Positions 921 to 50,234 of a DNA stretch of 64,000 nt are shown piece by piece. Each line of letters begins with the position of its first letter. The first letter of the stretch is position 1. Position numbers and translations under genes: made by a program. Origin of the DNA: Bispira polyomma (taxonomy: Eukaryota); the NCBI GenBank assembly GCA_965649765.1, contig OZ287752.1, positions 79,670,001 to 79,734,000 of the forward strand. Reading direction: 5' to 3'. The notes under the pieces are model-generated. The model saw only the letters and a program-made list of their open reading frames with translations, did no database searches and had not been told where the DNA came from.

Positions 921-957
921 GTTTCTGACTCTTTGTTTTCTTTATTTCTCTCCTCAG
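921..957 (+). promoter_or_regulatory. Branch point, polypyrimidine tract and 3' splice acceptor (near-identical before copies 1-7)
   Basis: TTCTGAC(T/G)CTTTGTTTTCTTTATTTCTCTCCTCAG; branch A about 29 nt upstream of the AG. Confidence 0.85.
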
Positions 958-3160
958 TGAAGAAATGAGGAAACCCCTAATACAGGAGTTGTGGAGCTCA
1001 GCAAATGCCCTTCGGATAGCTGCCTTGTGCAAAACGTTAGACAGTTGTGGCGATGTCAACCTTGCTAACCCATCTCCAATACCAAATACACTTTGCATGT
1101 CTGTGAGTAAACATATACCTGCCAGAGTCAAAGATGAACCTTGTTTTGATGACCATGACTTGTTAGACACTAGTGAGGTGGTAAGGCTAGGCAAAGTAAA
1201 TAAACAAACTGGCTTGGAATCAATGTTCAATTGCACATTGAGTAATATATTAAAAGAAGAAAGTGCCAGATTTATTTGCAATAGAGCCAATCCAAATCAT
1301 GCAACTGCTGAAAATGGGGGACTTAGTGACACTGCATTGATTAAAGTAGAATCCATTGAAAAAAACTGGCCTGTATCTGAAAATGGCACAGACATGGCTG
1401 ATGGTGATTCTGATGATACCATAGAATACTTTTCTGATGATAAACTTTCACAGGTGAAGAGCCATGGTAAATTGCAGACTTCTCCTAAGAGAGCAAGAGT
1501 CAGCAAGAATAAAAGTGGACATAAATCAGAAAGAAGAAGTGCTAAAAGTCCACGGAAAAGTATAGATAGTGTGAAGTTGAAACGCACGAGTGTTAAGGGT
1601 GTAAAATTAGAAAGGCACTTAGGAGACATGAAGTCAAAATGTGCTTATTGTGGTATGATATCTTATCACAGAAGAGTAAGAAAACATACATACGAGCAGC
1701 ATTATGATGAGTTTGTGCCAAAAGAATCTGAGGAAACTTCAGATGTTCATTGCAAAAAGCCGTTAAAAATCAGGTGTTTGAGCTGTGGGGAAGAGGTAGA
1801 AAGGCGGCACTATGCAGTGCATTTACTGACTGATCACCCCACTGACACTGTCAGAAAAACCAACCGAGGTAGACACTATAAAGTTAAAGTGGGCTGTTTG
1901 TTTTGTGACATTTCCATTAAGAATCTGAAGTATATGGAACACTTTGAACAGGTACACCCTGAAATGGGTTGTATGTTCAGTGAAACCAAATCAAATGTGG
2001 CAGCATCTAAATTCCTTGATCGTGTGAAGGTACCTGAAATTAAAAGAGTGGAGCATTTGATGATGTTTGCATGTGTCTATTGTGAAACAGATGAAATCAA
2101 AGTTACCTTCGAGGAGTATAAATCACATGTGTCGGAGTGCCATCCTAAGTTTTATGAAGTGAACATTAAGAACAAGCCCAATGTTACTCTTCATGATAAG
2201 ATTGAAACTGGCCTGGCAGAAATAACGGAGAACAAGGAAAAGATAGAAAAATCCAAATATCTTTATATAGATAGGAGTAGATACTTGCCAGAAGTGCCAC
2301 CACGTCCAAAAGAGTATGTCTGCTTCATATGTCAGCAGAAACTGCCTAATAGGAAGGCATACTACCAGCATGTAATGGACCAGCATGGGTTTAAGAAAAG
2401 AAAAACGTTGATGTGCCCATATTGTTATATATTTTTCTCTTGCCATCTGGCCAAAATAAATCATGAGGATGAGGCCCATGCCATTGAGAAATACATGTGT
2501 GAAACATGTGGCAAGGACTTTGTGCGGTCGTCTTCTCTGAAGATACACAAAGAACATGTGCACGTGGGCTATGTAAAGGAGTGCATGTTGAGGTACAAGC
2601 GGCGACCAAAGAACCTGCTGTGCAGCCATTGCGGTTCTCCATTCAAGACCACAACGAGTCTGAAGTACCACATCACAACAAAGCACAACAAGGAGAAGAA
2701 CTTTGTATGTTCCCAGTGTGACAAATCCTTCTCCAATTCCAGTGGACTCAAGAAGCACGAAATGACACACATGAGTGTCCAGAGCAGAAGGTTTTCCTGC
2801 ACGTTCTGCACATACAAAACCAACAGACGCCACGTCATGGAGTACCATCTGAGAATACACACTGGTGAGAAACCGTACAAGTGCAACTTGTGTGATTGCC
2901 GGTTTCGAATTAGTTTGACACTAAGGTGGCATCTGGAAAATAAACATGACATTAAAGAAACTGGTCAGGGAGTCTTTCATAAGTATTACCAGCCTGAACA
3001 TGGGCAGAAAAGTGAGGCAACAAGAATCATAGAGAGCATGTGTGTAGATTCTGAGGAAGATCTAGAAGTACCATTCTCAAGGACCACTGCAGATGATCAG
3101 GACATTGGACCAATGTCTGAGGACTTTGTTTTAAAAGAAGTAGAATTTCCCCAGTTTTAG
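958..3160 (+). CDS. Zinc-finger coding exon, copy 1 (BTB C-terminal helices + 4 atypical + 7 canonical C2H2 fingers)
   Basis: 731-aa ORF (ATG 965) with CxxC..HxxxH fingers and an HTGEKP linker. Preceded by CTGAC branch site (925-929), pyrimidine tract and CAG (AG 956-957); exon opens T-GAA-GAA-ATG (phase 2). Confidence 0.93.
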
Positions 3161-4324
3161 AATTCTTTCATACCTTGACTGACTTTGCAATATAGCTCTT
3201 GGTAATAGGTATTTCTGAACTTTGCATTACATAGTGTTAAAGTTATAATGGTGAAGTAGTTAAATTACTGGTGTCAGTTTTTTAAAATGGAAAGCGTTTA
3301 CAAGTTTGAATGACTAGAATGAGATATATCAGAAGAAAAATTAAATCAAAACATTAACTCATGTGAATCCTATCCCAAACTATGGGTGAATTGACTGTTT
3401 AACCAACCTAACTGACATGTCGATGTGTTAGGCAAGTTATAGTTTATTCTCCCTGAAGTTTATTCTCCCCAAGGTTTGAGTTCCACTAGATTGGCAATAG
3501 TAACTTCAAAACTAAATTGTCAAAGATAGTTGGAAATATGTAATGCTAGCAAAGTAGTTTTAACTAGAATTAAAATTTTTGAATGAAAAGCGGAAACTTT
3601 TTTTTTGAAAAATAGAAAAGCAGAGAGAAACTGGACATAAATATGCAAGCCGTTGATTCGCATTACAAATAGATTGTACACGTGAAGCATTTTGTGAAGT
3701 TCAGTACTTAGTGATATTACCATGGTTGAAGTCATTAGAATAGGTTATATGTGTGTCTTTTAAATCTGCTTGAAAATTAATATTTTAAGTTTGAATATTT
3801 TATATCTAATCTCTTTATTATTTTATCATGGTACATGTATAATCATTTGATAAATGTATTAATGAAGCATGCAAGGGCAATTGCAAGATTAATTGATGGC
3901 GTTATTTTCTATTGATGCCAATTGTAGGTGTGTAAAATATGTTCATCTTAAAACTTGCAGAAATACATAGACCTCAGTGTATGCATACACATATGTGGTA
4001 CACAAGAATAGCCTTTAAAGTAAAACACTGTACATAAACTCACTGCATTTATTGTGTTAATTCCCTTAACATTTGATGAATTGTTAAAGAACTTTCATTA
4101 GATGCTTTTGAGGTTAAAATGTACAATACACGTATAGATAAAAAAAATTAACATTGATTGACGATTGTGGCTTTAGCAAGAATTAAATTAGGGTCCCTTT
4201 AACCACTGGACCAACTCCCTTATTGCCAGGACACAAACCAATAATCCATGTTAGGGGCATCTATACATCAAATGTTTAATATAGATGCAGTTGAAATAAT
4301 TTTTGTACAAAAAATATTGCATGA

Positions 4325-8609: not shown

Positions 8610-10788
8610 TGAAGAAATGAGAAAAACCCTAATACAGGAGTTGTGGAGCTCATCAAATGCCCTTCGGATACCTGCTTTGTGCAGAATGTTAGACAGTTGT
8701 GGCGATGTCAACCTTGCTTACCTATCTCCAATACAAAATGCTCTTTGCACATCTGTGAGTAAACATATACCTGCCAGAGTTAAAGATGAACCTTGTTATG
8801 ATGACCATGACTCGTTAGACACTAGTGAGTTAGCAAGACCAGACATAGTAAATAAACAAACTGGCTTGGAATCGATGACCAATTGCACATTGAGTAATAT
8901 ATTGAAAGAAGAAAGTTGCAATAAAGCCATACCAAATCATGCAACTGCTCAAGATGGGGGACCCAGTGACACTACATTGATTAAAGTTGAATCTTTTGAA
9001 AAGAACTGGCCTGTATCTGAAAATGGCACAGACATGGGTGGTAGTGATTCTGATAATACCATAGAATACTTTTCTGATGATGATGAGAGCGATGGTAAAT
9101 TGCAGACAATTCCTAAGAGAGCAAGGGTCAGCAAGAATAGAAGTAGACATAAATCAGAAAGAAGTGCTAAAAGTCCTCGTAAAAGTGTAGATAGCGCGAA
9201 AAGGAGAACATTGAAATGCAGGAGTGTTAAGGGTGTAAAAATAGATAGGCATTTAGGAGACATGAAGTCAAAATGTGCTTATTGTGGTAATATATCTTCT
9301 CACAGCTTGGTAAGAAGACATACATACGAGCAGCATTATGATGAATTTATGCCAAAAGAATCTGAAAAAACTTCAGATGTTCAGTGCAAAAAGCAGTTGA
9401 AAATCAGGTGTTTAAGCTGTCGACAAGAGGTAGAGAGGCGGCATTATGCAGTGCATTTACTGACTGATCACCCCACTAATACTGCCAGAAAAACTAATCG
9501 AGGTAGACACCATAAAGTCAAAGTAGGCTGTCTATTTTGTGACAGTTCCATTAAGAATCTGAATTACATGGAACACTTTGAACAGGTACACCCTGAAATG
9601 GGTTCTATGTTCAGTGAAACCAAATCAAATGTGACAGCATCCAAGTTCCTTGATCGTGTGAAGGTATCTGAACTTAAAAGAGTGGAGCATATGATGATGT
9701 TTGCATGTGTCTATTGTGAAACAGATGAAATGAAATTTACCTTTGAGGAGTATAAATCACACGTATTAGAGTGCCATCCAAACTTTTATGAAGTGAACAT
9801 TAAGAACATTTATACTCTTCGTGATAAAATTGAAACTGGCCTGGCAGAGAAAACTGAGAACAAAGAAACAATAGAAAAATCCAAGTATCTCTACATAGAT
9901 AGGAGTAGATACCTGCCAGAATTGCCCCCACGTCCCAAAGAGTATGTCTGCTTCCTGTGTCAGCAGAAAGTGCACAATAGAAAGGCTTACTACCAGCATG
10001 CTGTGGACCAGCATGGGTTTAAGAAAAGAAGAACGTTTATGTGCCCATATTGTTATATCTTATTCTCATGCCATCAGACCAAAATGAACCATGAGGATGA
10101 GGCCCATGCTATTGAGAAATACATGTGTGAAACATGTGGCAAGGACTTTGTGAGGTCGTCTTCACTGAAGATACACAAAGAACATGTTCATTTGGGCTAT
10201 GTAAAGGAGTGTGTGCTGAGGTACAAGCGGAAGCCAAAGAACTTGCTGTGCAACCATTGCGGTTCTCCTTTCAAGACCACCAGAAGTCTGAAGTACCATA
10301 TCGCAACAAAGCACAGCAAGGAAAAGAATTTTGTATGTTCCCAGTGTAACAAATCCTTCTCTCATTCCAGTGGACTTAAGAAACATGAAAAGACACACTT
10401 AAGTGTCAAGAGCAGAAAGTTTTCGTGCACGTTCTGCACATTCAAAACCAACAGACGCCATGACATAAAGAACCATCTGAGAATACACACTGAGGAGAAA
10501 CCATATAAGTGCAACTTGTGTGATTGCCGGTTTCGAATTAGTTTGACACTAAGGTGGCATTTGGAAAATAAACACGATATCAAAGAAACTGGTCAGGGAG
10601 TCTTTCAGAAGTATTACCAGCCTGAACATGGGCAGAAAAGTGAGGCAACAAGAATTATGGAGAGCATGTATGTAGATTCTGAGGAAGATTTGGAAGTACC
10701 ATTCTCCAGAACCACTGCAGATGATCTGGACATTGGAACAATGTCTGAGGACTTTGGTCTGAAAGAAGTAGAGTTTCCCCAGTTTTAG
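8610..10788 (+). CDS. Zinc-finger coding exon, copy 2
   Basis: 723-aa paralog (ATG 8617); acceptor AG 8608-8609, phase 2. Small in-frame deletions; linker changed from TGEKP to TEEKP. Confidence 0.92.
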
Positions 10789-10817
10789 TATTCTTTCATG
10801 TCTTGACAGACATTGTA

Positions 10818-14184: not shown

Positions 14185-16372
14185 TGAAGAAATGAGGAAA
14201 CCCCTAATACAGGAGTTGTGGAGCTCAGCAAATGCCCTTCGGATAGCTGCTTTGTGCAAAATGTTAGAGACTTGTGATGATGTCAGCCTTGCTATCCCAT
14301 CTTCAATTCCAAATACACTTTGCACGTCTGTGAGTAAAGATATACCTTGCAGGGTCAAAGATGTACCTTGTAATGATGGCCATAACTTGTTAGACACTAG
14401 TGAGATAGCAAGGCTGGGCAAAGTAAATAAACAAACTGGCTTGGAATTGAAGTCCGATTACAAATTGAGTAATATATTGAAAGAAGAAAGTGCCAGATTT
14501 ATTTGCAATAGAGACATACCAAATCTTGCCACTGCTGAAAATGGTGAACCTAGTGACACTACATTGATTAAGGTAGAATCCTTTGAAGAAAGCTGGATTG
14601 TGTCTGAAAATGACACAGACATGGGTGGTAGTGATTCTGATGATACCATAGAATACTTTTCTGATGATAAACTTTCACAGGTGAAGAGCCATGGTAAATT
14701 GCAGACATCTTCTAAGAGAGCAAGGATCATCAAGAATAGAAGTAAACATGAATCAGAAAGAAGTGCTAAAAGTCCTTGTAAAAGTGTAAAAGGGAGAACA
14801 TTGAAACGCAGGAGTGTTAAGGGTGTTAAAAGGCATTTAGGAGACATGAAGTCAAAATGTGCTTATTGTGGTATGATATCATATCACAGGACAGTAAGAC
14901 ATCATACATACGAGCAGCATTATGATGAGTTTGTGCCAAAAGAATCTGAGGAAACTTTTGAAGTTCAATGCAAAAAGCCGTTAAAAATCAGGTGTTTAGG
15001 CTGTGGGATAGAAGTGGAAAGGCGGCGTTATGCAGTGCATTTACTGACTGATCACCCCACTGATACTGTCAGAAAAACTAATTCTGGTAGACACCATAAA
15101 GTCAAAGTAGGCTGTTTGTTTTGTGAAATCTCCATTAAGAATCTGAAGTATATGGAACATTTTGAACAGGTACACCCTGAAATGGGTTCTAAGTTCAGCG
15201 CAACCATTTCAAATGTGGCAGCGCCTAAGTTTCTCGATCGTGTGAACATTCCTGAAATTAAAAAAGTGGAGCATTTGATGATGTTTGCATGTGTCTATTG
15301 TGAAACAGATGAAATAAAACTCACCTTTGAGGAGTATAAATCGCATGTGTTACAGTGCCATCCTAAGTTTTATGAAGTGAACATTAAGAACATTTCTAAT
15401 CTTCATGATAAGATTGAAAGTGGCCTGGCAGGGAAAACAGAGAACAAGGAAAAGATAGAAAAATACAAGTATCTGTACATAGATAGGCGTAGATACCTGC
15501 CAGAAGTCCCACCACGACCTAAAGAGTACGTCTGCTTCCTGTGTCAGCAGAAAGTTCCTAATAGGAAAGCTTACTACCAGCATGCAATAGACCAGCATGG
15601 GTTTGAGAAAAGAAAAACGGTTATGTGCCCATATTGTTATATCTTATGCTCAAGCCATCACTCAAAATTAAATCATGAGGATGAGGCCCATGCCATTGAG
15701 AAATACATGTGTGAAACATGTGGCAAGGACTTTGTGAGATCATCTTCTCTGAAGTTACACAAAGAACATGTCCATTTAGGCTATGTAAAGGAGTGTGTGC
15801 TGAGGTACAAGCGGCAGCCGAAGAACTTGCTGTGCAGCCATTGCGGTTCTTCGTACAAGACCACCAAAAGTCTGAACTACCATATTGCAACAAAGCACAA
15901 TCAGGAGAGGAATTTTGTATGTTCCCAGTGTAACAAATGCTTCCTACATTCCAGTCATCTGAAGAAGCACAAAATGACACACATGAGTGCTAACAGCAAA
16001 AAGTTTTCTTGCTCGTTCTGCACATTCAAAACCAACAGACGCCATGACATGGAAAGCCATTTGAGAATACACACGGGTGAGAAACCATATAAGTGCAACT
16101 TGTGTGATTGCCGGTTTCGAATTAGTTTAACGCTAAGGTCGCACTTGGAAAATAAACATGATATTAAACAAACTGGTCAGGGAATCTTTCAGAAGTATTA
16201 CCAGCCTGAACATGGGCAGAAAAGTGAGGCAACAAGAATCCTAGAGAGCATGTGTGAGGATTCTGAGGAAGCCCTGGAATTACCATTCTCAAGGACCACT
16301 GCAGATGATCAGGACATTGTACCAATTTCTGAGCACATTGCTCTGAAAGACGTAGAATTCCCCCAGTTTTAG
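14185..16372 (+). CDS. Zinc-finger coding exon, copy 3
   Basis: 726-aa paralog (ATG 14192); acceptor AG 14183-14184, phase 2. Confidence 0.92.
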
Positions 16373-20054: not shown

Positions 20055-22206
20055 TGAAGAAATGAGGAAACCCCTAATACAGGAGTTGTGGAGTTCATCA
20101 AATGCCCTTCGGATACCTGCTTTGTGCAAAATGTTAGACAGTTGTGGCGATGTCAACCTTGCTAACCCATCTCCAAGAACAAATGCACTTTGCATGTCTG
20201 TGAGTAAACATATACCTGCTGGAGTCAAAGATGAACCTTGTAATGATGACCAGGACTCATTCAACACTAATGAGGTAGCAAGGCTAGGCATAGTAAATAA
20301 TGAAACTGGCTTGGAATCGATGTCCGATTGCAAATTGAGTAATATATTGAAAGAAGAAAGTGCCAGATTTATTTGCAGTAGAGCCATACCAGATCATGCA
20401 ACTGCTGAAAATGGGGGACCTAGTGACACTACATTGATTAAAGTAGAATCCTTTGAAAAAAACTGGTCTGTATCTGAAAGTGGCACAGACATGGCTGATA
20501 GTGATTCTGATGATACCATAGAATACTTTTCTGATGATAAACTTTCACAGGTGAAGAGACATGGTAAATTGCATACATCTCCTAAGAGAGCGGGGGTGGG
20601 CAGCAATAGAACTGGAAATAAGTCCGAAAGAAGAAGTGCTAAAAGTCAACGTAAAAGTGTGGATAGCATGAAAAGGAGAACATTGAAATGCAGGATTGTT
20701 AAGAGTGTAAAAATAGGAAGCCATTTAGGAGACATGAAGGCAAAATGTGCTTATTGTGGTATGATATCTTATCACAGGACAGTAAGACAACATACATACG
20801 AGCAGCATTATGATCAGTTTATGCCAAAAGAATCTGAGGAAGCTTCTGAAGTTCAGTGCAAAAAGCCATTGAAAATCAGGTGTTTAAGCTGTGGGGAAGA
20901 GGTAGAAAGGCGGCGTTATGCAGTTCATTTGCTAACTGATCACCCCACTGACACTGTCAGAAAAACTAATTATGGTAGACACCACAAAGTTAAAGTAGGC
21001 TGTTTGTTTTGTGACATTTCCATAAAGAATCTGAAGTATATGGAACACTTTGAACAAGTACATCCTGAAATGGGTTGTATGTTCAGTGATAAAACCAAAT
21101 CAAATGTGACAGCATCTAAGTTCCTTGATCGTGTGAAGGTATCTGAACTTAAAAGAGTGGAGCATATGATGATGTTTGCATGTGTCTATTGTGAAACAGA
21201 TGAAATCAAACTTACCTTTGAGGAGTATAAATCGCACGTGTTAGGGTGCCATCCTAAGTTTTATGAAGTGAACATTAAGAACATTTCTAATCTTCGTGAT
21301 AAGATTGAAACTGGCCTGGCAGATAAAACTGAAAACAAGGAAAAGATTGAAAAATCAAAGTATCTTTACATAGATAGGCGCAGATACCTGCCAGAAGTCC
21401 CACCACGTCCAAAAGAATATGTCTGCTTCCTGTGTCAGCAGAGAGTTCCTAATAGGAAAGCTTACTACCAGCATGCAATAGACCAACATGGGTTTGAGAA
21501 AAAAAAAACGGTTATGTGCCCATATTGTTATATCTTATTCTCAAGCCATTGTTCAAAATTAAATCATGAGGATGAGACGCATGCCATTGAGAAATACATG
21601 TGTGAAACATGTGGCAAGGACTTTGTGAGGGCGTCTTCTCTGAGGTTACACAAAGAACATGTCCATTTAGGCTATGTAAAGGAGTGTGTGCTGAGGTACA
21701 AGCGGAAACCAAAGAACTTGCTGTGCAATCAATGCGGTTCTTCATTCAAGACCACCTGGACTCTGAACTGCCATATTGCAACAAAGCACAATCAAGAGGA
21801 GAAGAATTTTGTATGTTCCCAGTGTAACAAATCCTTCTTACATTCCCGTTATCTGAAGAGGCATGAAAAGACGCACATTAGTGCTAACAACAGAAAGTTT
21901 TCCTGCATGTTCTGCACATTCAAAACCAATATGCGCCATGACTTGGAGAGCCATTTGAGAATACACACGGGTGAGAAACCATATAAGTGCAACTTGTGTG
22001 ATTGCCGGTTTCGAATAGGTTTGACACTAAGATGGCATCTGGAAAATAAACATGATATTAAACAGACTGGTCAGGGAGTCTTTCAGAAGTATTACCAGCC
22101 TGAACATGGGCAGAAAAGTGAGGCAACAAGAATCATAGAGAGCATGTATGTGGATTCTGAGGAAGATTTGGAATTACCATTCTCAAGGACCCCTGCAGAT
22201 AATTAA
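20055..22206 (+). CDS. Zinc-finger coding exon, copy 4 (C-terminal tail truncated)
   Basis: Acceptor AG 20053-20054, ATG 20062; the ORF-track start at 20035 lies in the pyrimidine tract. CAG>TAA stop about 20 codons early; all fingers intact. Confidence 0.9.
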
Positions 22207-24172
22207 GACATTAGACCACTTTTGAAGACTTTGGTCTGAAAGACATAGAATTTCCCCAGTTTTAGAAGTCTTGACAGATTTAGTAATATAGCTCTTTGTA
22301 ATAGGTATTTCTGAACATTGTTTACATGGTGTTAGAGTTGTAATTATGGTGAAGTTGTTAAATTTCTAGTGTCAGTCTTTTGTAAGGGGAAGTATTTACA
22401 AGTTTGAATGACTAGAATGAGATATATCAAAAGAAAAACCAAATCAAAAGTATAAAACATGTGAATTGTATCGGTCCTCAATTAAGGTTGAATTTACTTT
22501 TTATCCATCCTATCTAACATCTCTTTGTTGATTATTCAAGTTTTAGTCAAGTTTTTGTTGATTCTCTTCACCCTGAAGCTAACCTAGAATGTTGTGTAAG
22601 TCTACTTTGCAACACCTTGCATGATTTGGATAAAAAATACATGCCATTTTTTTCTGTGGATGAGGTTTACGTTCCACTGGATTGGCAATAGTAACTTCAA
22701 AACTAAATTGTCAAAGATAGTTGGAAATATGTAATGCTGGCAAAGTAGTTTTTAGCTAGAATTAAAATTTGATATCGTAAATGGGACATCCTTTTAAAAA
22801 GTAGAAAAGCTGAGAGAAACTAAACATAAATATGCGAGTCGTTGATTCACATTACAAATAAAATGCACATTCACCATTTAGGGAAGTTCAGATCTTGTTG
22901 ATATTACCATGGTCATTACCATATTAGGGTATTTATATGATTTAAGTTGTAATATCATATATCAAATCTGTTCTTAATCAAATATGCATGGTGTAATCAT
23001 ATAATATAAGGGCAATTCTTAGTGAATCTCTTGGATTAATTTATGGCGTTATTTCCTATTCATGTCAATTGCAAGTGTGTGCTAAAACAATCGCCAGAAG
23101 TACATAGATAGGGAGGTCTTCGATATTAGGCTTTTGCTGTGAATTTGTTAGCATGTCTATTCCTAATGGTTGATGGTTTCATTCTGTGTTGCTTTCTTTA
23201 TCGATTACTGAATGCCATTTTGATTTGTGATTCAAGGGGAGGGGCTGATCTCGACACCAAAAAGTTGAAAGGATTGCTTTTATTTTTAAAGTTTGCCCAA
23301 TAATATACAGTAGAATATGTCCACAAAAGAACTTAAATATTATTAGGATTGGCTAAATTCTAGTTGTTAAAAAGAAATTTTAAATTTTTTTTTTTTTTAA
23401 ATCTTCACTATTTATAACCATTTAATTGTTTTAGGGAAGATTGTTTGCCAGGTTGAAAATACTTCTAAACGATACATAGTCCTAGACATTAGTTATTGGA
23501 AGTCAGGTTGTTAATGATCTTTCCATATCGACCTATAATGCCCTATATGGTGGTGTATATTTGACTGATATAAATACTGGTAGCTAGTATTGCTGCCTGC
23601 TCTTGATCTGATTATATTTTGGAATTCCCCTACTACAGGATCAAATAGTGGTAAAATATGCATGTACTTGAAATGTTTAACCTATTTTCATTGGTAATGA
23701 ATTGAGGATAGTCATCAGTTTTAAATATTTTTTACTGTTCAAAAGTGTTCATACTGTGCTAATTTTCAGTTAGATTTTGTTGAGAAAGTTGAGGCAAAAT
23801 AACCATAATAAATTGCTACATGTTGTACTATACCATACGTTGAAGTTGTTTTTTTTTGGTTGACAAAATGGTATATTGTAGCCATTACTGCTATTTGTAT
23901 CGGTAGAACTGCTATTATCAGAACATTTTGGGAGAACAAGATTTTGTTTAGATAGTAGACGTTTTATAATTTCTGTTTGACATAAACTTGGGAGGGTGAC
24001 AATGGAGTTCATAAGGAAATAGTTGTAAAATAAAATAAAAGTTCTACTATATTTGTGGTACAATGCTAAATATGTCACTGCTGTAATGGCACACTTTAAT
24101 TGTAAAGTAAATTTTACAACAACTGTAAAGTCAAGTTTCTGACTCTTTTGTTTTCTTTATTTCTCTCCTCAG

Positions 24173-26375
24173 TGATCAAATGAGGAAACCCCTAATACAG
24201 GAGTTGTGGAGCTCATCAAATACCCTCCGGATACCTACTTTGTGCAAAATGTTAGAGAGTTGTGGTGATGTCAACCTTGCTAATCCATCCCCAATACCAA
24301 ATGCACTTTGCATATCTGTGAGTAAACATATACCTGCCAGAGTCAAAGATGAACCTTGTAATGACGACCATTACTCATTCAACACTAGTGAGGTAGCAAG
24401 GCTAGGTATGGTAAATACACAAACCGACTTGGAATCGATGTCCGATTGCAAATTGAGTAATATATTGAAAGAAGAAAGTGCCAGATTTATTTGCAATAGA
24501 GCCATACCAGATCATGCAACTGCTGAAATTGGGGGACCTAGTGACACTACATTGATTAAAGTAGAATCCTTTGAAAAAAACTGGTCTGTATCTGAAAATG
24601 GCACAGACATGGGTGGTAGTGATTCTGATGATACTATAGAATATTTTTCTGATGATAAAATTTCACAGGTGAAGAGACATGGTAAATTGCAAACAACTTC
24701 TAAGAGAGCAAGGGTCAGTAAGAATAGAAGTAAACATGAATCAGAAAGAATTGCTAAAAGTCCACGTAAAAGTGTAGATCGTGTGAAAAGCAAAACATTG
24801 AAATGCAGGAGTGTTAAGGGTGTAAAAATAGGAAGGCATTTAGGAGACATGAAGTCAAAATGTGCTTATTGTGGTATGATATCTTATCATAGGACAGTAA
24901 GACAACATACATACGAACAGCATTGTGATCAGTTTATGCCAAAAGAATTTAAGGAAACTTCTGAAGTTCAATGCAAAAAGCCGTTAAAAATCAGGTGTTT
25001 AAGCTGTGGGAAAGAGGTAGAAAGGCGGCGTTATGCAGTGCATTTACTGACTGATCACCCCACTGACACTGTCAGAAAAACTAATTCTGGTAGACACCAT
25101 AAAGTCAAAGTAGGCTGTTTGTTTTGTGACATTTCCATTAAGAATCTGAAGTATATGGAACACTTTGAACAGGTACATCCTGAAATGGGTTCTAAGTTCA
25201 GCGAAACCATAATGAATGTGGCAGCTCCCAAGTTTCTTGATCGTGTAAACATTCCTGAAATTAAAAGAGTGGAGCATTTGATGATGTTTGCGTGTGTCTA
25301 TTGTGAAGCAGATGAAATCAAATTTACCTTTGAGGAGTATAAATTGCACGTGTTAGAGTGCCATCCTAAGTTTTATGAAGTGAACATTAAGAACATTTCT
25401 AATCTTCGTGATAAGATTGAAACTGGCCTGGCAGAGAAAACTGAGAACAAGGAAAAGATAGAAAAATCAAAGTATCTTTACATAGATAGGCGCAGATACC
25501 TGCCAGAAGTCCCACCACGTCCCAAAGAGTATGTCTGCTTCCTGTGTCAGCAGAAAGTTCCTAATAGGAAAGCTTACTACCAGCATGCAATAGACCAGCA
25601 TGGGTTTGAGAAAAGAAAGACTGTTATGTGCCCATATTGTTATATCTTATGCTCAAGCCATCACTCAAAATTAAATCACGAGGATGAGGCCCATGCCATT
25701 GAGAAATACATGTGTGAAACATGTGGCAAGGACTTTGTGAGATCATCTTCTCTGAAGTTACACAAAGAACATGTCCATTTAGGCTATGTAAAGGAGTGTG
25801 TGCTGAGGTACAAGCGGAAGCCAAAGAACTTGCTGTGCAGCCATTGCGGTTGTTCGTACAAAACCACAGCGAGGCTGAACTACCATATTGCGACAAAGCA
25901 CAATCAGGAGAGGAAGTTTGTATGTTGCCAGTGTAACAAAACCTTCTTACATTCCAGTCGTCTGAAGAATCACGAAAAGACGCACATTAGTGCTAACAAC
26001 AGAAAGTATTCCTGCACGTTCTGCACATTCAAAACCAACAGACGCCATGACATGGAAAGCCATTTGAGAATACACACTGGTGAGAAACCATATAAGTGCA
26101 ACTTGTGTGTATGTCGGTTTCGAATAAGTTTGACATTAAGGTGGCATCTGGAAAATAAACACGATATCAAAGAAACTGGTCACGGAGTCTTTCAGAAGTA
26201 TTACGAGCCTGAACATGGGCAGAAAAGTGAGGCAACAAGAATCGTAGAGAGCATGTGTGTGGATTCCGAGGAAGATCTGGAAGTACCGTTCTCTAGGACC
26301 ACCGCAGATGATCAGGACATTGGACCAATTTCTGAGGACTTTGGTCTAAAAGAAGTAGAATTTTCCCAGTTTTAG
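24173..26375 (+). CDS. Zinc-finger coding exon, copy 5
   Basis: 731-aa paralog (ATG 24180); acceptor AG 24171-24172; opens T-GAT-CAA-ATG (phase 2). Confidence 0.92.
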
Positions 26376-29138: not shown

Positions 29139-31314
29139 TGAAGAAATGAGGAAACCCCTAATACAGGAGTTGTGGAGCTCAGCAAATGCCCTTCGGATAC
29201 CTGCTTTGTGCAAAATGTTAAAGAGTTGTGATGATGTCAACCTTGCTATCCCATCTTCAATTCCAAATACACTTTGCATGTCTGTGAGTAAACATATACC
29301 TGCCAGAGTCAAAGATGAACCTTGTAACGACGACCATGACTCATTCAACACTAGTGAGGTAGCAAGGCTAGGCATAGTAAATAATCAAACTGGCTTGGAA
29401 TTGATGTCTGATTGCAAATTGAGTAATATATTGAAAGATGAAAGTGCAAGATTTATTTGCAATAGAGACATACCAAATCTTGCAACTGCTGAAAATGGGG
29501 GACCTAGTGACACTACATTGATTAAAGTAGAATCCTTGGAAAAAAGCTGGTCTGTATCTGAAAATGGCATAGACATGGGTGGTAGTGATTCTGATGATAC
29601 CATAGAATACTTTTCTGATGATAAACTTTCACAGGTGAGGAGACATGGTAAATTGCAGACATCTTCAAAGAGAGCAAGGGTCAGCAAGAATAGAAGTATA
29701 CACAAATCAGAAAGCAAAAGTGCTAAAAATCCACGTAAAAGTTTAGATCGTGTAAAAGGGAGAACATTGAAAAGCAGGAATGTTAAAGGTGTAAAAATAG
29801 AAAGGCATTCAGGAGACATGAAGTCAAAATGTGCTTATTGTGGTATGATATCTTACCACAGAAGAGTAAGACAACATACATACAAACAGCATTGTGATCA
29901 GTTTATGCCAAAAGAATCTGAGGAAGCTTCTGAAGTTCAGTTCAAAAAGCCATTGAAAATCAGGTGTTTAAGCTGTGGGGAAGAGGTAGAGAGGCGACAT
30001 TATGCAGTGCATTTACTGACTGATCACCCCACTAACACTGTCAGAAAAACTAATCGGGGTAGACACCATCAAGTCAAAGTAGGCTGTTTGTTCTGTGATA
30101 TTTCCATTAAGAATCGGAAGTATATGGAACACTTTGAACAGGTACACCCTGAAATGGGTTCTAACTTTAGCGAAACCAAATCAAATGTGGCAGTGCCCAA
30201 GTTCCTTGATCGTGCAAACATTAAAAGAGTGGATGGTTTGATGATGTTTGCGTGTGTCTATTGTGAAACAGATGAAATCAAACTTACCTTTAAGGAGTAT
30301 ATATCACACGTGTTAGAGTGCCATCCTAAGTTTGATGAAATTGACGTTAAAAAGATTGAAACTGGCCTGGCAGAGAAAACTGAGAACAAGGAAGAGATAG
30401 AAAAAGCCAAGTATCTTTACATAGACAGGAGTAGATACCTGCCAGAAGTCCCACAACACCCCAAAGAGTATGTATGTTTCCTGTGTGAGCAGAAAGTGCC
30501 TAATAGGAAGGCATACTTCCAGCATGCAGTGGACCAGCATGGGTTTAAGAAAGGAAAAATGGTTATGTGCCCATATTGTTATACGTTATTCTCAAGCTAT
30601 CTAACAAAAATAAATCACGAGGATGAGACCCATGCCATTGAGAAATACATGTGTGAAACATGTGGCAAGGACTTTGTGAGATCATCTTCTCTGAAGATAC
30701 ACAAAGAACATGTCCATTTGGGTTATGTAAAGGAGTGTGTGCTGAGGTACAAGCGGAAGCCAAAGAACTTGCTGTGCAACCAATGCGGTTCTTCATACAA
30801 GACCACCTGGAGTCTGAACTACCATATTACAACAAAGCACAATCAGGAGAGGAACTTTGTATGTTCCCAGTGTAAGAAAGCCTTCTCTCATGCCAATGGT
30901 CTCAGGAGACATGAAAAGACGCACATGAGTGCTAACAGCAGAAAGTTTTCCTGCACTTTCTGCACATTCAAAACCAACAGATGCATTGACATGAAGAGCC
31001 ATTTGAGAATACACACGGGTGAGAAACCTTATAAGTGCAACTTGTGTGATTGCCGGTTTCGAATTGGTTTGACGCTAAGGTCGCATCTAGAAAATAAACA
31101 TGATATTAAACAAACTGGTCAGGGAGTCTTTCAGAAGTATTACCAACCTGAACATGGGCAGAAAAGTGAAGCAACAAGAATCCTAGAAAGCATGTGTGTG
31201 GAATCTGAGGAAGATCTTGAATTGCCATTCTCAAGGACCCCTGCAGATGATCAGGACATTGGACCAATCTCTGAGGACTTTGGTCTGAAAGAAGTAGAAT
31301 TTCCCCAGTTTTAG
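29139..31314 (+). CDS. Zinc-finger coding exon, copy 6
   Basis: Acceptor AG 29137-29138, ATG 29146, phase 2; intact fingers, short in-frame deletions. Confidence 0.92.
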
Positions 31315-33528: not shown

Positions 33529-35725
33529 TGATCAAATGAGGAAACCCTTAATACAGGAGTTGTGGAGCTCAGCAAATACCCTTCGGATACCTGCTTTGTG
33601 CAAAATGTTAGAGAGTTGTGATGATGTCAACCTTGCTATCCCATCTTCAATTCCAAATACACTTTGCATGTCTGTGAGTAAACATATACCTGCTGGGGTC
33701 AAAGATGAACCTTGTAATGATGACCAGGACTCAATCAACACTAGTGAGGTAGCAAGGCTAGGCATAGTAAATAATGAAACTGGCACACCATCATTGTCCG
33801 ATTGCAAATTAAGTAATATATTGAAAGAAGAAAATGCCAGATTTATTTGCAATAGAGACATACCAAATCTTGCCACTGCTGAAAATGGGGGACCTAGTGA
33901 CACTACATTGATTAAAGTAGAATCCTTTGAAAAAAACTGGTCTGTATCTGAAAACGACACAGACATGGGTGGTAGTGATTCTGATGATACCATAGAATAC
34001 TTTTCTGATGATAAACTTTCACAGGGAAAGAGCCATGGTAAATTGCAGACATCTTCTAAGAGAGCAAGGGTCAGCAAGAATAGAAGTAAACATGAATCAG
34101 GAAGAAGTACTAAAAGTCCTCATAAAAGTGTCGATAATGTAAAAGGGAAAACATTGAAACGCAGGAGTGTTAAGGGTGTGAAAGTAGAAGGGCATTTAGG
34201 AGACATGAAGTCAAAATGTGCTTATTGTGGTATCATTTCATTTCACACCGTAGTAAGAAGACATACATATGAGCAACATTATGATCAGTTTATGCCAACA
34301 GAATCTGAGGAAGCCTCTGAAGTTCAGTGCAAAAAGCCATTGAAAATCAGGTGTTTAAGCTGTGGGGAAGAGGTAGAAAGGCGACATTATGCAGTGCATT
34401 TACTGACTGATCACCCCACTGACACTGTCAGAAAAACTGATCATGGTAGACACCTTAAAGTTAAAGTAGGCTGTTTGTTTTGTGAAATCTCCATTAAGAA
34501 TCGGAAGTATATGGAACACTTTGAACAGGTACACCCTGAAATGGGTTCTAAGTTCAGCGAAACCAAATCAAATGTGGCAGCTCCCAAGTTTCTTGATCGT
34601 GTAAACATTCCTGAACTTAAAAGAGTGGAGCATTTGATGATGTTTGCATGTGTCTATTGTGAAACAGATGAAATAAAATTTACCTTTGAGGAGTACAAGT
34701 CTCACGTGTTAGAGTGCCATCCTAAGTTTTATGAAGTGAATATTAAAAACATTTCTAATCTTCATGATAAGATTGAAACTGGCCTGGCAGAGAAAAGTAA
34801 GAAGAAAGAAGAGATAGAAAAAGCCAAGTATCTTCACATAGACAGGAGTAGATACCTGCCAGAAGTTCCACCCCATCCTAAAGAGTATGTCTGCTTCCTG
34901 TGTCAGCAGAAACTGCCTAATAGAAAGGCTTACTACCAGCATGCAATGGACCAGCATGGGTTTAAGAGAAGAAAAACTGTTATGTGCCCATATTGTTATA
35001 TCTTATTTTCAAGCCATCATACCAAAAGAAGCCACGAAGACGAAGCCCATGCTATTGAGAAGTACATGTGTGAAACATGTGGCAAGGACTTTGTGCGGTC
35101 GTCTTCTCTGAAGATACACAAAGAACATGTCCATTTGGGCTATGTACAAGAGTGTGTACTGAGGTACAAGCGGCAGCCAAAGAACTTGCTGTGCAATCAA
35201 TGCGGTTCTTCATTTAAGACCACCTGGAGGCTTAACTACCATATTGCAACGAAGCACAACAAGGAGAGGAACTTTGTATGTTCCCAGTGTGACAAATCCT
35301 TCTTACATTCGGCTAGCCTCAAGCAACACGAAAAGACGCACATTAGTGCAAACAACAGAAAGTTTTCCTGCACATTCTGTACATTCAAAACCAACAGACG
35401 CCATGACTTGGAGAGCCATTTGAGAATACACACTGGTGAGAAACCATATAGGTGCAACTTGTGTGATTGCCGGTTTCGAATTAGTTTGACGCTAAGGTCG
35501 CATCTGGAAAATAAACATGATATAAAACTTACTGGTCAGGGAGTCTTTCAGAAGTATTACCAGCCTGAACATGGGCAGAAAAGTGAGGCAACAAGAATTA
35601 TAGAGAGGATGTGCTTGGAATCTGAGGAAGGCCTGGAATTACCATTCTCGAGGACCACTGCAGATGATCAGGACATTGGACCAATTTCTGAGAATTTTCG
35701 TCTGAAAGAAGTAGAATTTCCCTAG
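33529..35725 (+). CDS. Zinc-finger coding exon, copy 7
   Basis: 729-aa paralog (ATG 33536); acceptor AG 33527-33528, phase 2; CAG>TAG removes the last 2 residues. Confidence 0.92.
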
Positions 35726-37492
35726 CTTTAAAATTTTTTCATGTCTTGACAGACTTGGTAATATAGCTCTTTGTAATAGGTATTTCTGAAAATTGTGTTT
35801 ATTATATAGTGGTGAATTAGCCAAATTACTGGTGGCAGTTTTTTTATAAGGAAAAGCATTTACAAGTTTGAATGACTAGAATGGGACATACCAACGAAAA
35901 GTCGAATCAAAACTTTAAAACATGTGAATCATAAACATCAAATAAGGTTGAATTGACTTTTAGCCATCCTAGCTGACATATTTTTTGTTGATTTGTTTTT
36001 AGGTTTGTTGGCTTCACCCTGAAGCTAAGCTAGAATATTGTTCAAGTTTACTTTGCATCATTTGGATCAAAAGTCATGCCATTTGTTTCTGTGGACAGGG
36101 TTTAAGTTACACTAGTTCTTGATTCCTAGTATAAATAGAATATACATGGAGTATCTTGTGAAGTTCAGTATTAGGTAATGTTGCGATGGTTTTAAGTCAT
36201 TAGCATAGGTTATTTATGTGTCCTAATCGAAAACTGTGAGCTTCAAAAAGATTTCAAGTTCTAATATTGTATTTCTAATCTAATCTAAATCAAAGATGCA
36301 TGGTGTAATCATATAATGGATGGATTATTGAAACCTACATGGCCAATTGTGTGATTAATTGATGGGGCTATTTTCTATTGATGCCAATTGTAGGTGTGTA
36401 AAATATGTCGAGCTTAAAACTTACTAGAAATACTTCAAATATATAGACATGAGTGTATGCATACACCTGTACACAAGAAAAGGTTTAAAAGTAAAACACA
36501 CTACATAAACTCACTGCATCTGTTGCGTGAATTACCTTACCATCCAGTAGGGAGTTCTTAATGCATGTTACGCAAAGCTTTGTACGCCTACGAAAACACT
36601 TGCCTTTCATTCTAGTGCAGAATATAAAGAATCTTCCAGGATCTGGTCCTTTTGCTTGTTTTGGACATTTTGCGTTCAACATGCAGATGTTTTATCTGAC
36701 GATTACCTCATTTTGTGACAATTTAGGCTGCCCTTTTAACAATTAATACATATACCTCATTAAGTAAACTGGTTTATGGATCAATCCATACTTTGAAAGA
36801 TCTAACTTGATTTTATAATGGGGTGACTCACTGACTTGGATTCCAATCGCTATGTACATGTTTATGGAATAGTTGGAGAAGTTGCGTCAAAATTTCCACT
36901 TTTAATACCTGCCAATCAATTTCATTGCTGTCCTCTGGGTGTGTGTATTCAAAATTTAATTGTCAGACTGAAGCAGATTCATCAGTATAAATTTTTTTTA
37001 TGAAGTTCTGTTTTAATAGATTAAAAAATTTCTAGTGTTGTCATACAAGATAGTGATATCACTGTACTTTTGAGCATTAAAATGTAATCGGTCATAATTT
37101 ATAACTACAATATTTGTGTATTTTATTTGGTTAGGTTGCTAGTTTGTTTTACTGATGTAAGGTTTATTATTTATGCAACTGTTTTAGTGCAGTATTCAAA
37201 CGTAGCCTTTCTAGTACAAATCCTTAAAAATTGTTTGGATTGTGTGGTAGTGATAAGGTTGTGTTTATTTGGTTCTAGTTTATACTAACTAGTAATGATA
37301 GGTGAAAGAAACTTTAGAAAGCTGATATCAGGCATGTTCATTTTGAGGATATATACATGCCCACGTAAGGCCATCAGTTTTTTAGAACTTTTGAAATGTT
37401 CTGTCTGGGGTGATGGTACACATATTGAACAAGGATATTTAATTTAGGTAAAAATTTAAAGTACTCTTTGTTTTTTGTTTCTGTCCCCTCAG

Positions 37493-39923
37493 CTTTATGG
37501 ATGAATGCAGACTTATACAGGAGATAAAAGACTTAGTGACTGTTCTACAGGTTACAGAGATGCTTGAAAATATGCTTGAACATGTGATAAAAACTGCCAT
37601 GAAGGAAACCATGACCAAGCCATGTTCTATACAATTGGATAGGCTAACCACCGTATCATCAAGAAAGAACACTTCCAAGGAAGCCAGTGCTGTTAGTAGG
37701 GCTGTCGAAAATGTTGTGAAAAATATCAAGTCAGAATGTGGCGAAGCAGAGCAAGTTGGAGCAACAAAAGTCAAGCTAAAGAGAAGAATGTCGGACGATC
37801 CGACTAATGCTGAAACTGGTGGGAACGAAGAGATGAAGGAATTTATGGAAGATGCTTTGCAAGGCTCTGACTATCACAGTGATTCTAGTGACACAGTGGA
37901 CTATTTTTCCGATGACCCAGACTATGAGGTAACTAAGCCAAAGCCAAGAAAGCTGAAAAAGGCTGTCTTGAATGTGGCCACATTGGATTCAAATAGTACT
38001 ACTGAACCTATTGAATTGCCCAGCGGAACAGAGCCCAAATTACCAAAATCAAGTTTGGTAAAGGCAAAATGCAGTTTGTGTGGAATGATATCAAGATATG
38101 ACGTTATGAGAAGACATGTTTATGAGCAGCACTTGGATGAGTTTGTGCACAAGAAAAGTGTGGTCAAAGAGCTTGTAAAGATCAGATGTTTGGTGTGCAG
38201 AGAGGAAATCGCTAGAAACGATTATGATGTGCACCTGTTGCTTCAACATCCCGCCCCAGTGGAAAAGAAGACAAACCGCGGGCGCTACCACAAGATGAAA
38301 GTGGGCTGTTTGTACTGCAACATAGTCGTGAGAAATGTGTTCTATATGGAGCACTTAAAAAATGCTCATCCTGAAGAGGCACAGAAATTTGTGGAGCCAA
38401 AACCCAGGAGCATCGGTCCAAAGTTTGAACATGCTAGAGTGGGTGATGTCAATGCTGTCATTCATTTGTTATTTGTGACGTGTGTATATTGTGAAAACCC
38501 CACAGAAGTAAGTTGTGACCAGTACAAGGCCCATGTTCTCGAGTACCATCCAAATTATGCTGACGTACATATCAGTAACATCAACACCACCCGGGCAGTG
38601 CCAAATACTACACCCGATCAGATAGTAAGGCCTACCAAAGAGATGACCGAAAAAGCCAAGTATCTGTTTGTTGATAGAAGCAGGTATCTTCCTGAAAAAC
38701 CCCCTCCGCCGGACGTCTACGTCTGCAATCTTTGTGGTGAAGGATGTCGATATAGAAAGTACTTCTACGATCATGCCAGACAAAAACACGGCTTCAAGAA
38801 GGTCAATAGCTGTAATTTTTGCCACAAGCTGTTCAGAACTGGGGCAGAAAAGATAAACCATGAAGACGAGAACCACGCAAAAGAAAAGTACTTGTGTGAA
38901 ACTTGTGGGAAGGACTTTGTAAGGTCAACATCTCTGAAAATTCACAAGGCAAATGTTCACCTTGGCCTGATACGAAACTGTGAACTCTTCAAGAAGAAGC
39001 CTTTGCGGAAGGAAAATCTGTTGTGTAGCTACTGTGGCGTATCCTACAACAGAGCGTCCAGCCTGGCAAACCATATTGCATCTAAGCACCATAAAGTGAG
39101 GAAGTTCAAGTGTAACTTCTGCAACAAGGCTTTTTTTAGCAGCAGTTCCATGCGGACGCATAAAAAAATACACATGGAAGTCACAAAGAGGAAGTATGCC
39201 TGCCCATTCTGCTCGTACAGAAATAACAGACGCCATGTGATGCACGCCCACCTGAGAATCCACACTGGTGAGAAGCCTTTTAGGTGCAGCCTTTGTGGGA
39301 GTCGTTTTCGGATCAGTTTGACCCTCAGGTGGCACCTGGAAAATAAGCACGACATGAAACTAACCGGCCAAGGAGTCTTTCAGGAGTATTACGAGCCTGA
39401 AAACGGGGAACATAGTGAAGCCACCCGGATACTTGAGAGCATGCCCAGCGACTCAGAAGATGAAGAAGGTCTGAAGTTTAGCCTGGGAAAAGTAGACAAT
39501 ATGACACGAGAGGAGGAACTCAGCCAAGAAGAGATCGTCTTTATGGAAAACCACGAAGCTAAGATTGCCCATTCGTCTTCTGTGGCCGCCGCTGCCGCTG
39601 CTGCAACTACTAGTAGTAATAGTAGCAGTAGTACAACAACTGAGCTCAGGGAAGGGCAGAGGGCTGAGAGTCAAAGAGAAGAGTCGACCGCAGTCAAAAC
39701 TCTAATGGATAACTCTCTGAGTGGACAAGGTGACGAGCGCCTGCCATTGATGCATCCGCCAGTTTCTGAACAGTTGGAGGAGGTGACTGAAGCCTTCGAT
39801 AGTAGAAGGACCCAGCTTATGCACAACCAAGCCACTTCTAGTAGCCAGAATAGTGCCGAGAATGAACCGTCGTATTACCCCTATGCTGCAGTTTATCAGC
39901 CACCCTATAATATGTATTATTAA
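37493..39923 (+). CDS. Diverged zinc-finger coding exon, copy 8
   Basis: 808-aa ORF with the same 4+7 finger layout. Pyrimidine tract and CAG (AG 37491-37492); opens C-TTT-ATG (phase 2). N-terminus LIQEIKDLVTVLQVTEM; Ala/Ser/Glu-rich tail. Confidence 0.92.
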
Positions 39924-46858: not shown

Positions 46859-46932
46859 AATTTATATATTTACAGAGATGAAGAGCTGAATACAGAATTT
46901 ATATATTTACAGAGATGAAAAGCTGAATACAG
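46859..46932 (+). repeat. 37-bp tandem duplication spanning the copy 9 splice acceptor
   Basis: AATTTATATATTTACAGAGATGAA(G/A)AGCTGAATACAG twice. Confidence 0.95.
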
Positions 46933-49900
46933 ATATTGTGGATCTGTTGTTTGAAGTGCAAGTAAAGAATATTGCCCAGACTCTAGAAAATGCCACAAGA
47001 AAACTTAAACAAAAGACAAAAGGTCAAGCACCAGACGAGGAGGATGAAGAGACGGAAGATGAGATTCCGGCTGACTTTTCAGTGCCTCCCATAAAGGCAG
47101 AATCCCCAACTGATGGCTCTGAGTACAGCGAAGGGGACAATACAACTACCCGTGTAGTGGATAACAGGGGGTACTGTAGTCAAAGGGTAAAGGAGAGTAA
47201 TCAACTGATAAGTATCGATAAAGTGATTAAAGCAGAAAAGATCAATGTGAGTGAAGAAGAGGGAACCATCTCTGATGATGAGGAGGAGGTTGTTGAAAAG
47301 AAGAGACTCAAAAGAGGTGATTCAGTAAAAGGTAGATGTATCTACTGTGGTCTGGTGGCAACTCCGAACAGGTTGACATCACATATATATGAGCAACACT
47401 ATGAGGCAATTTTGTCTCAGGACGAAACATTATTCGATCACAATTTAAGTGACACCACAAGAATGGCCAACAAGGTAAAATGCTTGTCGTGTGATTCTGT
47501 TATTTTAAGGAAGTTCTTTGTGGGACATTTGGAGGCTCATCATTCTGAGAAACTTCTACCAGACGTCTCACTCACTAATTTAAGACTGAAAGTAATGTGT
47601 CTGATTTGTAAAGAGACTGTAGACCAAAATATTTATAGCGAGCACTTGAGAAAGGTTCATCCCAATGAAGGAAACAGTTTGGAAGAATTAATGAAGAAAC
47701 TGGTTAGTGGGGAAAAGCAGGCAGAGGGATTTAGAATGAAAGACGTTGAGGATATGTTATTGTTGGAATGTATATATTGTGACCGTGGCAATATCTTAAG
47801 ATGTAGGGATTATGACATGCATATACTTGGTACACATTCTCCAAACAGTGGGCTACAGAAGAAGAATAACAAGAAACAAACCCCTGAAAGTGAAGAGTAT
47901 AAAGGAAACAGGAAGAGGGCAAGAAAAAAAAGTACTAAAGGGGGAAGGAACACACGGAAGGTGACTAAGGTGCCTGCAAAACGGAAGAAACGCATTTCAA
48001 GTAACATAGAATCACTTCAATCAAACGTTGAGGAAATTGAAGAAGAACATTTAGCTTCACACATCTCCAAAAGCAAGGTTTTTAAGGAGGAGTCCATAAA
48101 TGATGGTTATTCTGATGATTCTAATGACACAGTATATTATGCTGGGGAAGATGATGATGAAATGTCAGTTGAAAACACAGCTACAGAGTTTGATGATATT
48201 AATAATGAACAGAACAAAGATCTGCCACCACAGCCAGTAAAAGGTCAGTGTCCCTATTGTGGCATGATCTCAGTGTATACAACAGTAAAAGTTCACATGT
48301 ACAAAACCCACTATGAGGAAATATTAGAAGAAGACGAGCCCGGCGGCATTGAGCGTTCCGATAAGAGAGTGTTGAAGGTTTTGTGCCAGCTGTGCAACAA
48401 GGAAGTGTTCAGGAAATATCTGCCCATTCATATGGGATCACAACATCCTGAATGTTACGATGGGGGTACAACGTGTACTGTAGATGTGGGCTGCCTTTTG
48501 TGTGACCAGACAATAAAGAATAGACAGTATCGTCCCCATTTAAAAGAGAAGCACCCGCAGATGTTGAAGAAGTTGGACATACTGGTAAGAAACACCGGTA
48601 CCAGTGGCACTGTAAAGTCAAAGAAAATAGACGAGACAGTCAGTTTCATGGAGATTAACTGCGTGTACTGCCCTGGTAACAAGACAATAAATTACATGAA
48701 GTACCGAGATCATGTGGGCTCCAGCCATCCAAGTTACAGTAAAATTATGGTCAATAATATCAGTATAGTCAAGAGGACACTGAATCCCAAGAAGCCAGTT
48801 GGTAAGAAAACCCAGAAGGTACCCAGAAATGCACCAAACCCTGTACTGCAGAAGAACAGGGAGTATCTAACGATTGACAGGGTTGCCTGCTTACCGCCGC
48901 TCCCGACTCCACCACGTGAGTACTACTGTGCGGCATGTGATGAGAAGTTCTTTACAAAGCGGAGCTACAAGAAACACGCCAGTGAAGTACACAACTATCC
49001 CAAAGACCATGTCTATGTGTGCAACTACTGTTACCAGTTGTTTGAAACTGTGGCCAAAGGTCAGAATCACGAAGATGAAGTGCATGCACTTGAAAAGTAT
49101 CAGTGCGAAACCTGCGGTAAGCTCTTTACCAGAGCGAGCTCATTGCGGATGCACAAGGAGTGCATTCATTTGGGTATCAAGCGGATTCGGAAAAGTCCTA
49201 GGAGGTTTCGAGATCATATCTGTAGTTATTGTGGGAAAATATTCAAATTGGCAGCGGTGCTGGAAAATCACATTATGAGAGCCCACAAGCATGAGAAGAA
49301 TATGTGTTGTGACGTGTGTGACAAAAGGTTCGTGGATAAATCCGAACTGACCAAGCACAAGTTGACCCACCTGGACAAGAAGGACTATAAGTATTCATGT
49401 GCGTATTGTTCCTATAAAGCCGTCAGGAAGCATATTATGGTCTACCACGAGAGGATCCATACTGGTGAAAAGCCTTACCTGTGTAACTTGTGTGGAAGCA
49501 GACATCGCATTGGGTTGACCTTCAGGAGTCACATGTTGAACAAGCATTGTGTAGAACTTCACGGCAGTGAGGACCACCAGAAATACTACCACCCAGAAAC
49601 ACCAGTCAGTCTGGGTGGAAACTTGATTGAGGATTTGAAGGAGCCCTCACCGGATATGGAAGATAAGCAGGAGCTGGAACAGTCCTGCCCTCCTGAGACC
49701 ATGCTTCCTTTGCCACCAGAAGAGAAACAAAAGTCTCCAGTGAGCAGCAGTAGTAGCAGAATCCAAGTGACCACTGATATACAACATTCCCAGCCTCCTG
49801 AAAGAAGTGTTCACATTCCAAAAGAGTTGCCCAGTCCAGTAGTGGAAAGGATTGATACAAACCTACCAAGTGAGCAGAGTATGGATATGCGTGTTCAAGG

Positions 49901-50234
49901 ACAGAGTATGCCGGTGGGGTACTTGAAGCCTCCTAGCAGCAGTAGTACATATCAAGCAGATACATTCCAACATTCCAATGTAGCACATTACAGTACAACA
50001 GGTTTCCCTCAGATGGCTCATTCAGATAGCTCTTTCCTCGATTACTCGCGCATGTCAAGCCTTCCTGCACAGGAATGGACTCACGATACAGCAGGTTTGT
50101 CCCTGGATAGGTTCAGTGAACTGAACCATCAAGCCTACAGGTACTACGCAAGCACGCTGCAAGGTAGCATGGACAAAGCGGGAAGGACGCAGCAAAACAA
50201 CCTTGGACCAAAAGACTACAGTGACCACCACTGA
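46913..50234 (+). CDS. Most diverged zinc-finger coding exon, copy 9 (atypical 4-finger block duplicated, about 15 fingers)
   Basis: About 1100-aa frame with no nearby ATG (track starts at GTG 46938). Acceptor TTTACAG (AG 46911-46912); opens A-GAT-GAA-AAG (phase 2). HTGEKP linker; Pro/Ser/Gln-rich tail. Confidence 0.92.

Follow-up and report, generated by a model that had tools for sequence, protein, structure and literature searches.

Ten side-by-side zinc-finger open reading frames in a marine segmented worm are best read as the alternative last exons of one gene with a single shared BTB start, an arrangement known from the fly genes lola and mod(mdg4) that seems to have arisen again independently. 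We are fairly confident of this reading, although the splicing itself is inferred from the anatomy of the locus and not from RNA. The window analysed is a stretch of 64,000 nucleotides from Bispira polyomma (assembly GCA_965649765.1, contig OZ287752.1, hereafter C5), whose position 1 corresponds to C5:79670001. A sequence-only reading of the window had proposed that nine open reading frames, each starting after a phase-2 acceptor, were alternative terminal exons of a single gene whose constant BTB exon lay 5' of the window. The observation was confirmed and extended to ten copies, and its interpretation was supported.

All the exons lie on the forward strand. Within the window, the variable exons V1 (958 to 3160, 733 codons), V2 (8610 to 10788, 725 codons), V3 (14185 to 16372, 728 codons), V4 (20055 to 22206, 716 codons), V5 (24173 to 26375, 733 codons), V6 (29139 to 31314, 724 codons) and V7 (33529 to 35725, 731 codons) belong to class A, V8 (37493 to 39923, 809 codons) to class B, and V9 (46913 to 50234, 1106 codons) to class C. 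V4 stops about 19 codons earlier than its sisters, but its fingers are intact. The tenth copy, V0 (C5:79665741-79667865, 707 codons), lies 4.3 kb upstream, in such a way that positions 1 to 957 of the window are the end of the spacer that follows it. With a loose pattern, 11 fingers were counted in each of V0-V8 and 15 in V9, seven of them canonical in each exon, and a four-finger block is present twice in V9. No other family members were found in the 1.04-Gb genome.

All nine exon starts in the window follow CAG, and the long frame begins at the second base of the exon, which corresponds to intron phase 2. For V0-V8 this AG has by far the most pyrimidine-rich tract between -150 and +60 nt (16-18 of 20 positions), whereas V9 has an AT-rich tract (10 of 20) and a rival AG 37 nt upstream in another phase. 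A 37-bp tandem duplication lies over the V9 acceptor (46859 to 46933), and use of the upstream AG (exon start 46876) would shift the frame and produce a stop after 13 codons. The sequence-only reading had estimated that the phase agreement could arise by chance 1 time in 9, but this is not the right test because the copies share one ancestor. The spacers, of 1.8-7.0 kb, are made of duplicated 3' flank and pre-acceptor intron among V1-V7 and contain no copy of the constant exons.

The predicted constant exons were found 10-12 kb upstream of the window. The first, E1 (C5:79657688-79657877), has an ATG at 79657716, contains 54 BTB codons, covers positions 4-38 of the Pfam BTB profile (PF00651), and ends in a phase-0 donor. 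The second, E2 (C5:79659980-79660083), covers positions 53-78 of 110 and ends after YTG in a phase-2 GTAAGT donor, in such a way that the BTB domain is cut before its last helices. Both exons are single-copy in the genome, and no copy of them was detected between the variable exons in 264 kb. The E2 donor and all ten acceptors are in compatible phase, each variable exon ends in a stop, and no strong donor was found inside or just after any of them.

The host is probably a polychaete annelid, as the best named hits of the neighbouring SIK exon are Paralvinella and Capitella, ahead of molluscs and arthropods. A second species has the same order, with the SIK kinase followed by E1 and E2 (76% and 88% identical, same phases) and then by 13 variable exons of classes A, B and C, and all eight acceptors checked are phase 2. 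No second E1 or E2 was found in the 137 of 185 kb read in that species. Different classes expanded in each of them, with seven versus one exon in one class and one versus 11 in another, the 11 being co-orthologues of V8, and the arrays extend over 57 kb here and 161 kb in the second species. A class B exon of a third species also has a phase-2 acceptor. A family-specific profile found only these two other species among 1.84 billion representatives, E1 found only its orthologue in the second species, and searches of JGI metagenomes gave no match. Ten kilobases around SIK in Capitella and Paralvinella held no match to E1, E2 or the variable exons, although this flank is too short to mean absence.

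Start methionines are not conserved, while the 40 nt before most acceptors and the ATG-less start of V9 are. The first Met falls anywhere from codon 2 to codon 184 across 18 exons, and V9 has none until codon 184. Nevertheless, the first 32 codons of V9 show a dN of 0.13 and a dS of 1.65 against the orthologue although no ATG precedes them. The 40 nt before the acceptors are 70-74% identical between species for classes A and B, while the next window is at background (41-52%). Before V1 (918 to 957), a branch-point-like CTGAC and a pyrimidine tract are shared by V1-V7 and are 73-74% identical to the orthologue in the second species, and the pyrimidine tract before V8 (37451 to 37492) is 70-73% identical to the class B acceptors of that species. 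V1-V7 have intact frames and dN/dS values of 0.28-0.43, although in their first 32 codons the ratio is only 0.65.

These data are best explained by a single promoter region that transcribes E1 and E2, with the phase-2 donor of E2 spliced to one of the ten tandem last exons. Each of these would supply a two-helix segment that probably completes the BTB fold, an acidic/basic linker, four atypical fingers (eight in V9), seven canonical C2H2 fingers, a stop and presumably its own poly(A) site. This would give up to ten transcription-factor isoforms of about 800-1200 residues, with a shared dimerisation core and different DNA-contact residues, and new isoforms would arise by tandem duplication of a unit of acceptor, exon and 3' flank. 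Regarding BTB completion, the start of V1 is predicted to fold as two helices (4-17 and 21-28, pLDDT 82), but the exon starts on their own gave blank or unspecific results in Pfam, PDB profile, Atlas and fold searches, so that their homology to BTB helices 5-6 is inferred. The predicted fold of the four atypical fingers was of low confidence (pLDDT 54) and was not used. AATAAA or ATTAAA sequences occur after every stop, but are too common in AT-rich DNA to count as evidence. Three sequencing runs covered the intron evenly along the E2-V0 stretch and showed no splice joint, so they are DNA.

Joining is most simply, and more likely than not, in cis, with competition between poly(A) use and downstream acceptors, although trans-splicing as in lola remains possible. 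No motif conserved above shuffles was found in the first 1.5 kb of the last constant intron, nor any conserved pseudo-donor, in an analysis made without RNA data on promoters. Competing docking and selector sequences, as in the 3' variable regions of the PGRP-LC type (PMC6191721), were not found either, as the best complements between the first 3 kb of intron 2 and the 600 nt before each acceptor scored 24-30 against shuffle means of 26-27, though short or G-U-rich pairings would be missed.

Among the alternatives, it is conceivable but unlikely that only one or a few exons per class, such as V0, V8 and V9, are really joined to E2, and that most of the young class A copies are rarely used by-products of tandem duplication. 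V1-V7 are recent (dS 0.19-0.32), show relaxed constraint in their first 224 codons (dN/dS 0.65), include the early stop of V4 and lack expression data. However, all seven keep frames of more than 700 codons, all 11 fingers and the acceptor, their finger regions show a dN/dS of about 0.25 at a dS of about 0.3, and no decayed copy exists in 264 kb. Still less likely is that the variable exons are separate genes, each with its own promoter and non-coding first exon or a spliced leader, making BTB-less zinc-finger proteins from the ATG next to the acceptor. V1-V8 have an ATG within 4-10 nt of the acceptor, the class A Met is conserved in the second species, and the duplicated unit includes 500-750 bp upstream of the acceptor that could hold a promoter. 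By contrast, no such ATG is present in V9, in its orthologue or in four of six class B exons checked in the second species, and the frames stay open and in phase 2 up to the acceptor in all 19 exons examined. This alternative also leaves a conserved half-BTB gene without an end, and spliced leaders were not found in the annelid Dimorphilus, "similar to other annelids" (PMC7854359). An assembly artefact from haplotypes or mis-joined contigs, which tandem similar copies could suggest, is largely refuted, as the copies differ by a dS of 0.19-0.32 or more, DNA contigs from two samples cover the E2-V0 stretch without a relevant joint, and an independent assembly of another species has the same layout.

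We compared the locus with known systems of similar design. In Drosophila lola, common N-terminal BTB exons are joined to one of many unique C-terminal zinc-finger exons, giving at least 20 isoforms by cis and trans splicing (PMC1947980). However, the BTB domain held by the lola common exons is probably TTK-type, a type confined to arthropods (PMC11426971), whereas the constant part described here stops at Pfam position 78 of 110, its E1 lacks the FxLRWN TTK motif, and each variable exon is 2.1-3.3 kb long with 11-15 fingers, where lola exons appear to carry one or a few. Thus, the similarity to lola and mod(mdg4) proposed in the sequence-only reading holds as an analogy only. Drosophila mod(mdg4) also has a constant BTB region and a long array of alternative 3' exons (31 isoforms, PMC13490949), but these sit in five clusters with their own promoters, some on the opposite strand, and are joined only in trans, whereas here all exons are on one strand in one array, and no conserved U1-like or pairing motif was found in the part of the last constant intron searched. 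The genes broad, fruitless and tramtrack share a BTB core with alternative zinc-finger last exons (e.g., broad Z1-Z6, PMC4175664), probably few and ancient, while here lineage-specific bursts of 7 and 11 copies are found. Vertebrate-type ZBTB proteins also combine a non-TTK BTB with many C2H2 fingers, as do mammalian BTB-C2H2 proteins, but these and the tandem KRAB/ZAD zinc-finger clusters expand as whole genes, whereas here only the last exon is duplicated and the start of the effector domain is shared.

No earlier report of this locus, or description of such a system in annelids, was found in the literature searched, which was incomplete. A non-TTK annelid case would show convergence towards the constant-BTB/alternative-finger design, and represents a different way to grow a zinc-finger repertoire, by exon duplication under one promoter. 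More speculatively, this could be an independently evolved annelid system in which a poly-zinc-finger repertoire expands exon by exon behind one shared half-BTB, and in which the choice of last exon changes both the DNA target and the final BTB helices, in such a way that splicing sets which isoforms can dimerise with which. Seven different contact-residue sets were found at fingers 8 and 9 among V1-V7. Positive selection at contact residues is not claimed, as pN is higher there (0.18 versus 0.095) but so is pS (0.41 versus 0.21). In practice, gene callers annotate these exons as separate BTB-less genes.

In order to know if the series of zinc-finger frames in the window behaves as expected for alternative last exons, as proposed by the sequence-only reading, the frame borders were analyzed first. 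The window holds nine long plus-strand frames (V1-V9) with seven canonical C2H2 fingers each (Pfam zf-C2H2). At all nine proposed exon starts a CAG precedes the frame, and the frame starts at the second base of the exon, so the intron is phase 2. For V1-V8 this AG has much the best pyrimidine tract nearby, while for V9 the tract is AT-rich and duplicated. A 37-bp tandem duplication (window positions 46859-46933) gives V9 two acceptors, the upstream one of which would end the protein after 13 codons, leaving a finger-less BTB product, and it is not present in the second species described below (species 2). In V4 an early stop was detected (22204-22263), with the homologous tail continuing about 19 codons beyond it. 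A tenth copy, V0 (C5:79665741-79667865, C5 being the contig that carries the window), starts 4.3 kb before the window with the same kind of acceptor. A profile of the family-specific four-finger block finds only these ten exons in the 1.04-Gb genome, V9 twice. These four N-terminal fingers (1631-2308 in V1, and equivalents) have unusual spacing, often end in His-Pro, and form a block with no close relative outside three species among 1.84 billion representatives. V9 carries this atypical block twice (47328-47930 and 48240-48914), and so does its species-2 orthologue.

The sequence-only reading also placed a constant exon 5' of the window. A genome-wide BTB scan gave a hit 12 kb upstream of the window, where two constant exons were found. 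E1 (C5:79657688-79657877) has an acceptor, a 28-nt leader, an ATG and 54 codons, and ends in a phase-0 donor, whereas E2 (C5:79659980-79660083) has 34 codons plus two bases and ends four residues past the YTG motif in GA/GTAAGT, phase 2. E1 matches Pfam BTB positions 4-38 and E2 positions 53-78 of 110, although the E2 match is weak (E 0.067, and 0.006 for its orthologue). An intron near this BTB position is not itself odd, as several other BTB hits in the genome also end at profile positions 75-79. E1 is single-copy by protein and DNA search and E2 by DNA search, and tblastn finds no further copy of either in 264 kb that include the whole array. What is duplicated among V1-V7 is about 500-750 bp of intron, the exon and its 3' flank.

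The conservation of this layout was investigated next. The upstream neighbour is a SIK kinase gene, with a 2.7-kb last exon (C5:79624614-79627322) 30 kb upstream of E1, whose best named relatives are Paralvinella and Capitella, so the host is probably a polychaete. V8 found eleven close relatives and one class A relative on a 1.095-Mb contig of ENA assembly ERZ22147071 (species 2), and the profile search added a V9 orthologue on the same contig. Walking that contig gave SIK at 248 kb, E1 at 331 kb (76% identical, phase-0 donor), E2 at 339 kb (88%, GA/GTGAGT), one class A exon at 356 kb, class B exons from 376 to 487 kb and the class C exon at 501 kb, in such a way that SIK lies here 80 kb upstream. 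A class B exon from the metagenome of a marine biofilm study also has a phase-2 acceptor. Synonymous sites between the two species are near saturation (dS 1.5-2.3). The tree has three groups, with A expanded to seven in the window's species and B to eleven in species 2, although A itself is not firmly supported and V0 is a long branch loosely attached to it. V0 is 44% identical to V1 and has no counterpart between E2 and the class A exon in species 2, so it was lost there or diverged fast here.

Different data support that the exons are read from upstream. The first Met falls at codon 2 to 184 across 18 exons, and the ATG of V8 is GTG in several species-2 co-orthologues. V9 has no Met for 183 codons, yet its first 20 residues are nearly the same in species 2, and its first 32 codons give dN 0.13 and dS 1.65. 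The 40 nt before class A and B acceptors are 70-74% identical between species, and the next 40 nt only 41-52%; part of this is shared base composition, but the shuffle test keeps composition and gave p = 0.003. V1-V7 keep intact frames with dN/dS of 0.28-0.43, about 0.25 in the fingers and 0.65 in the first 224 codons. All seven recognition helices of V9 are identical between species, whereas V1-V7 have seven different contact-residue sets at fingers 8 and 9, for which we do not claim positive selection.

By subtraction, BTB positions 79-110 must come from the variable exons if the domain is complete. The exon starts share a loose pattern of hydrophobic residues, and the start of V1 is predicted as two helices, which would fit the last two helices of the BTB fold. 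However, these 40-residue pieces match no BTB on their own, so completion of the domain by the variable exons remains a hypothesis.

Taken together, the feature is real and the proposal of a single gene with alternative last exons is well supported, although the sequencing runs found were DNA and the splicing itself is inferred. Most likely, one transcript starts upstream of E1, the donor of E2 is joined to one of ten acceptors, and that exon ends the protein and, presumably, the mRNA. No V exon has a strong donor, so each acts as a last exon and the choice would be exclusive without special pairing, in such a way that using the poly(A) site of an exon would remove all later ones, and reaching a later one would need read-through. 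Neither docking/selector complementarity (first 3 kb) nor a conserved motif (first 1.5 kb) was found in the last constant intron. Trans-splicing as in lola or mod(mdg4) remains possible, since mod(mdg4) also lacks complementary sequences (PMC13490949).

We compared the locus with these known systems. It appears to work like lola (PMC1947980) and mod(mdg4), but it is not a member of their family: TTK-type BTBs are confined to arthropods and carry FxLRWN (PMC11426971), which E1 lacks. It also differs in the cut inside the BTB, in the size and finger number of the exons, and in the recent bursts of duplication. In our literature searches no paper on such a locus in annelids was found.

Downstream of the V9 exon, the window holds a tyrosine-recombinase (DIRS-type) retrotransposon at 55300-61400 (+), with a gag-like ORF, reverse transcriptase and RNase H pieces separated by stops, and a recombinase ORF, although all Pfam hits were weak. 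A 169-bp tandem repeat with 7.3 copies was also detected at 62565-63783. Arrays 77-84% identical to it lie in the constant introns of the species-2 locus, far closer than synonymous sites between the species, so it is a conserved or transferred mobile repeat.
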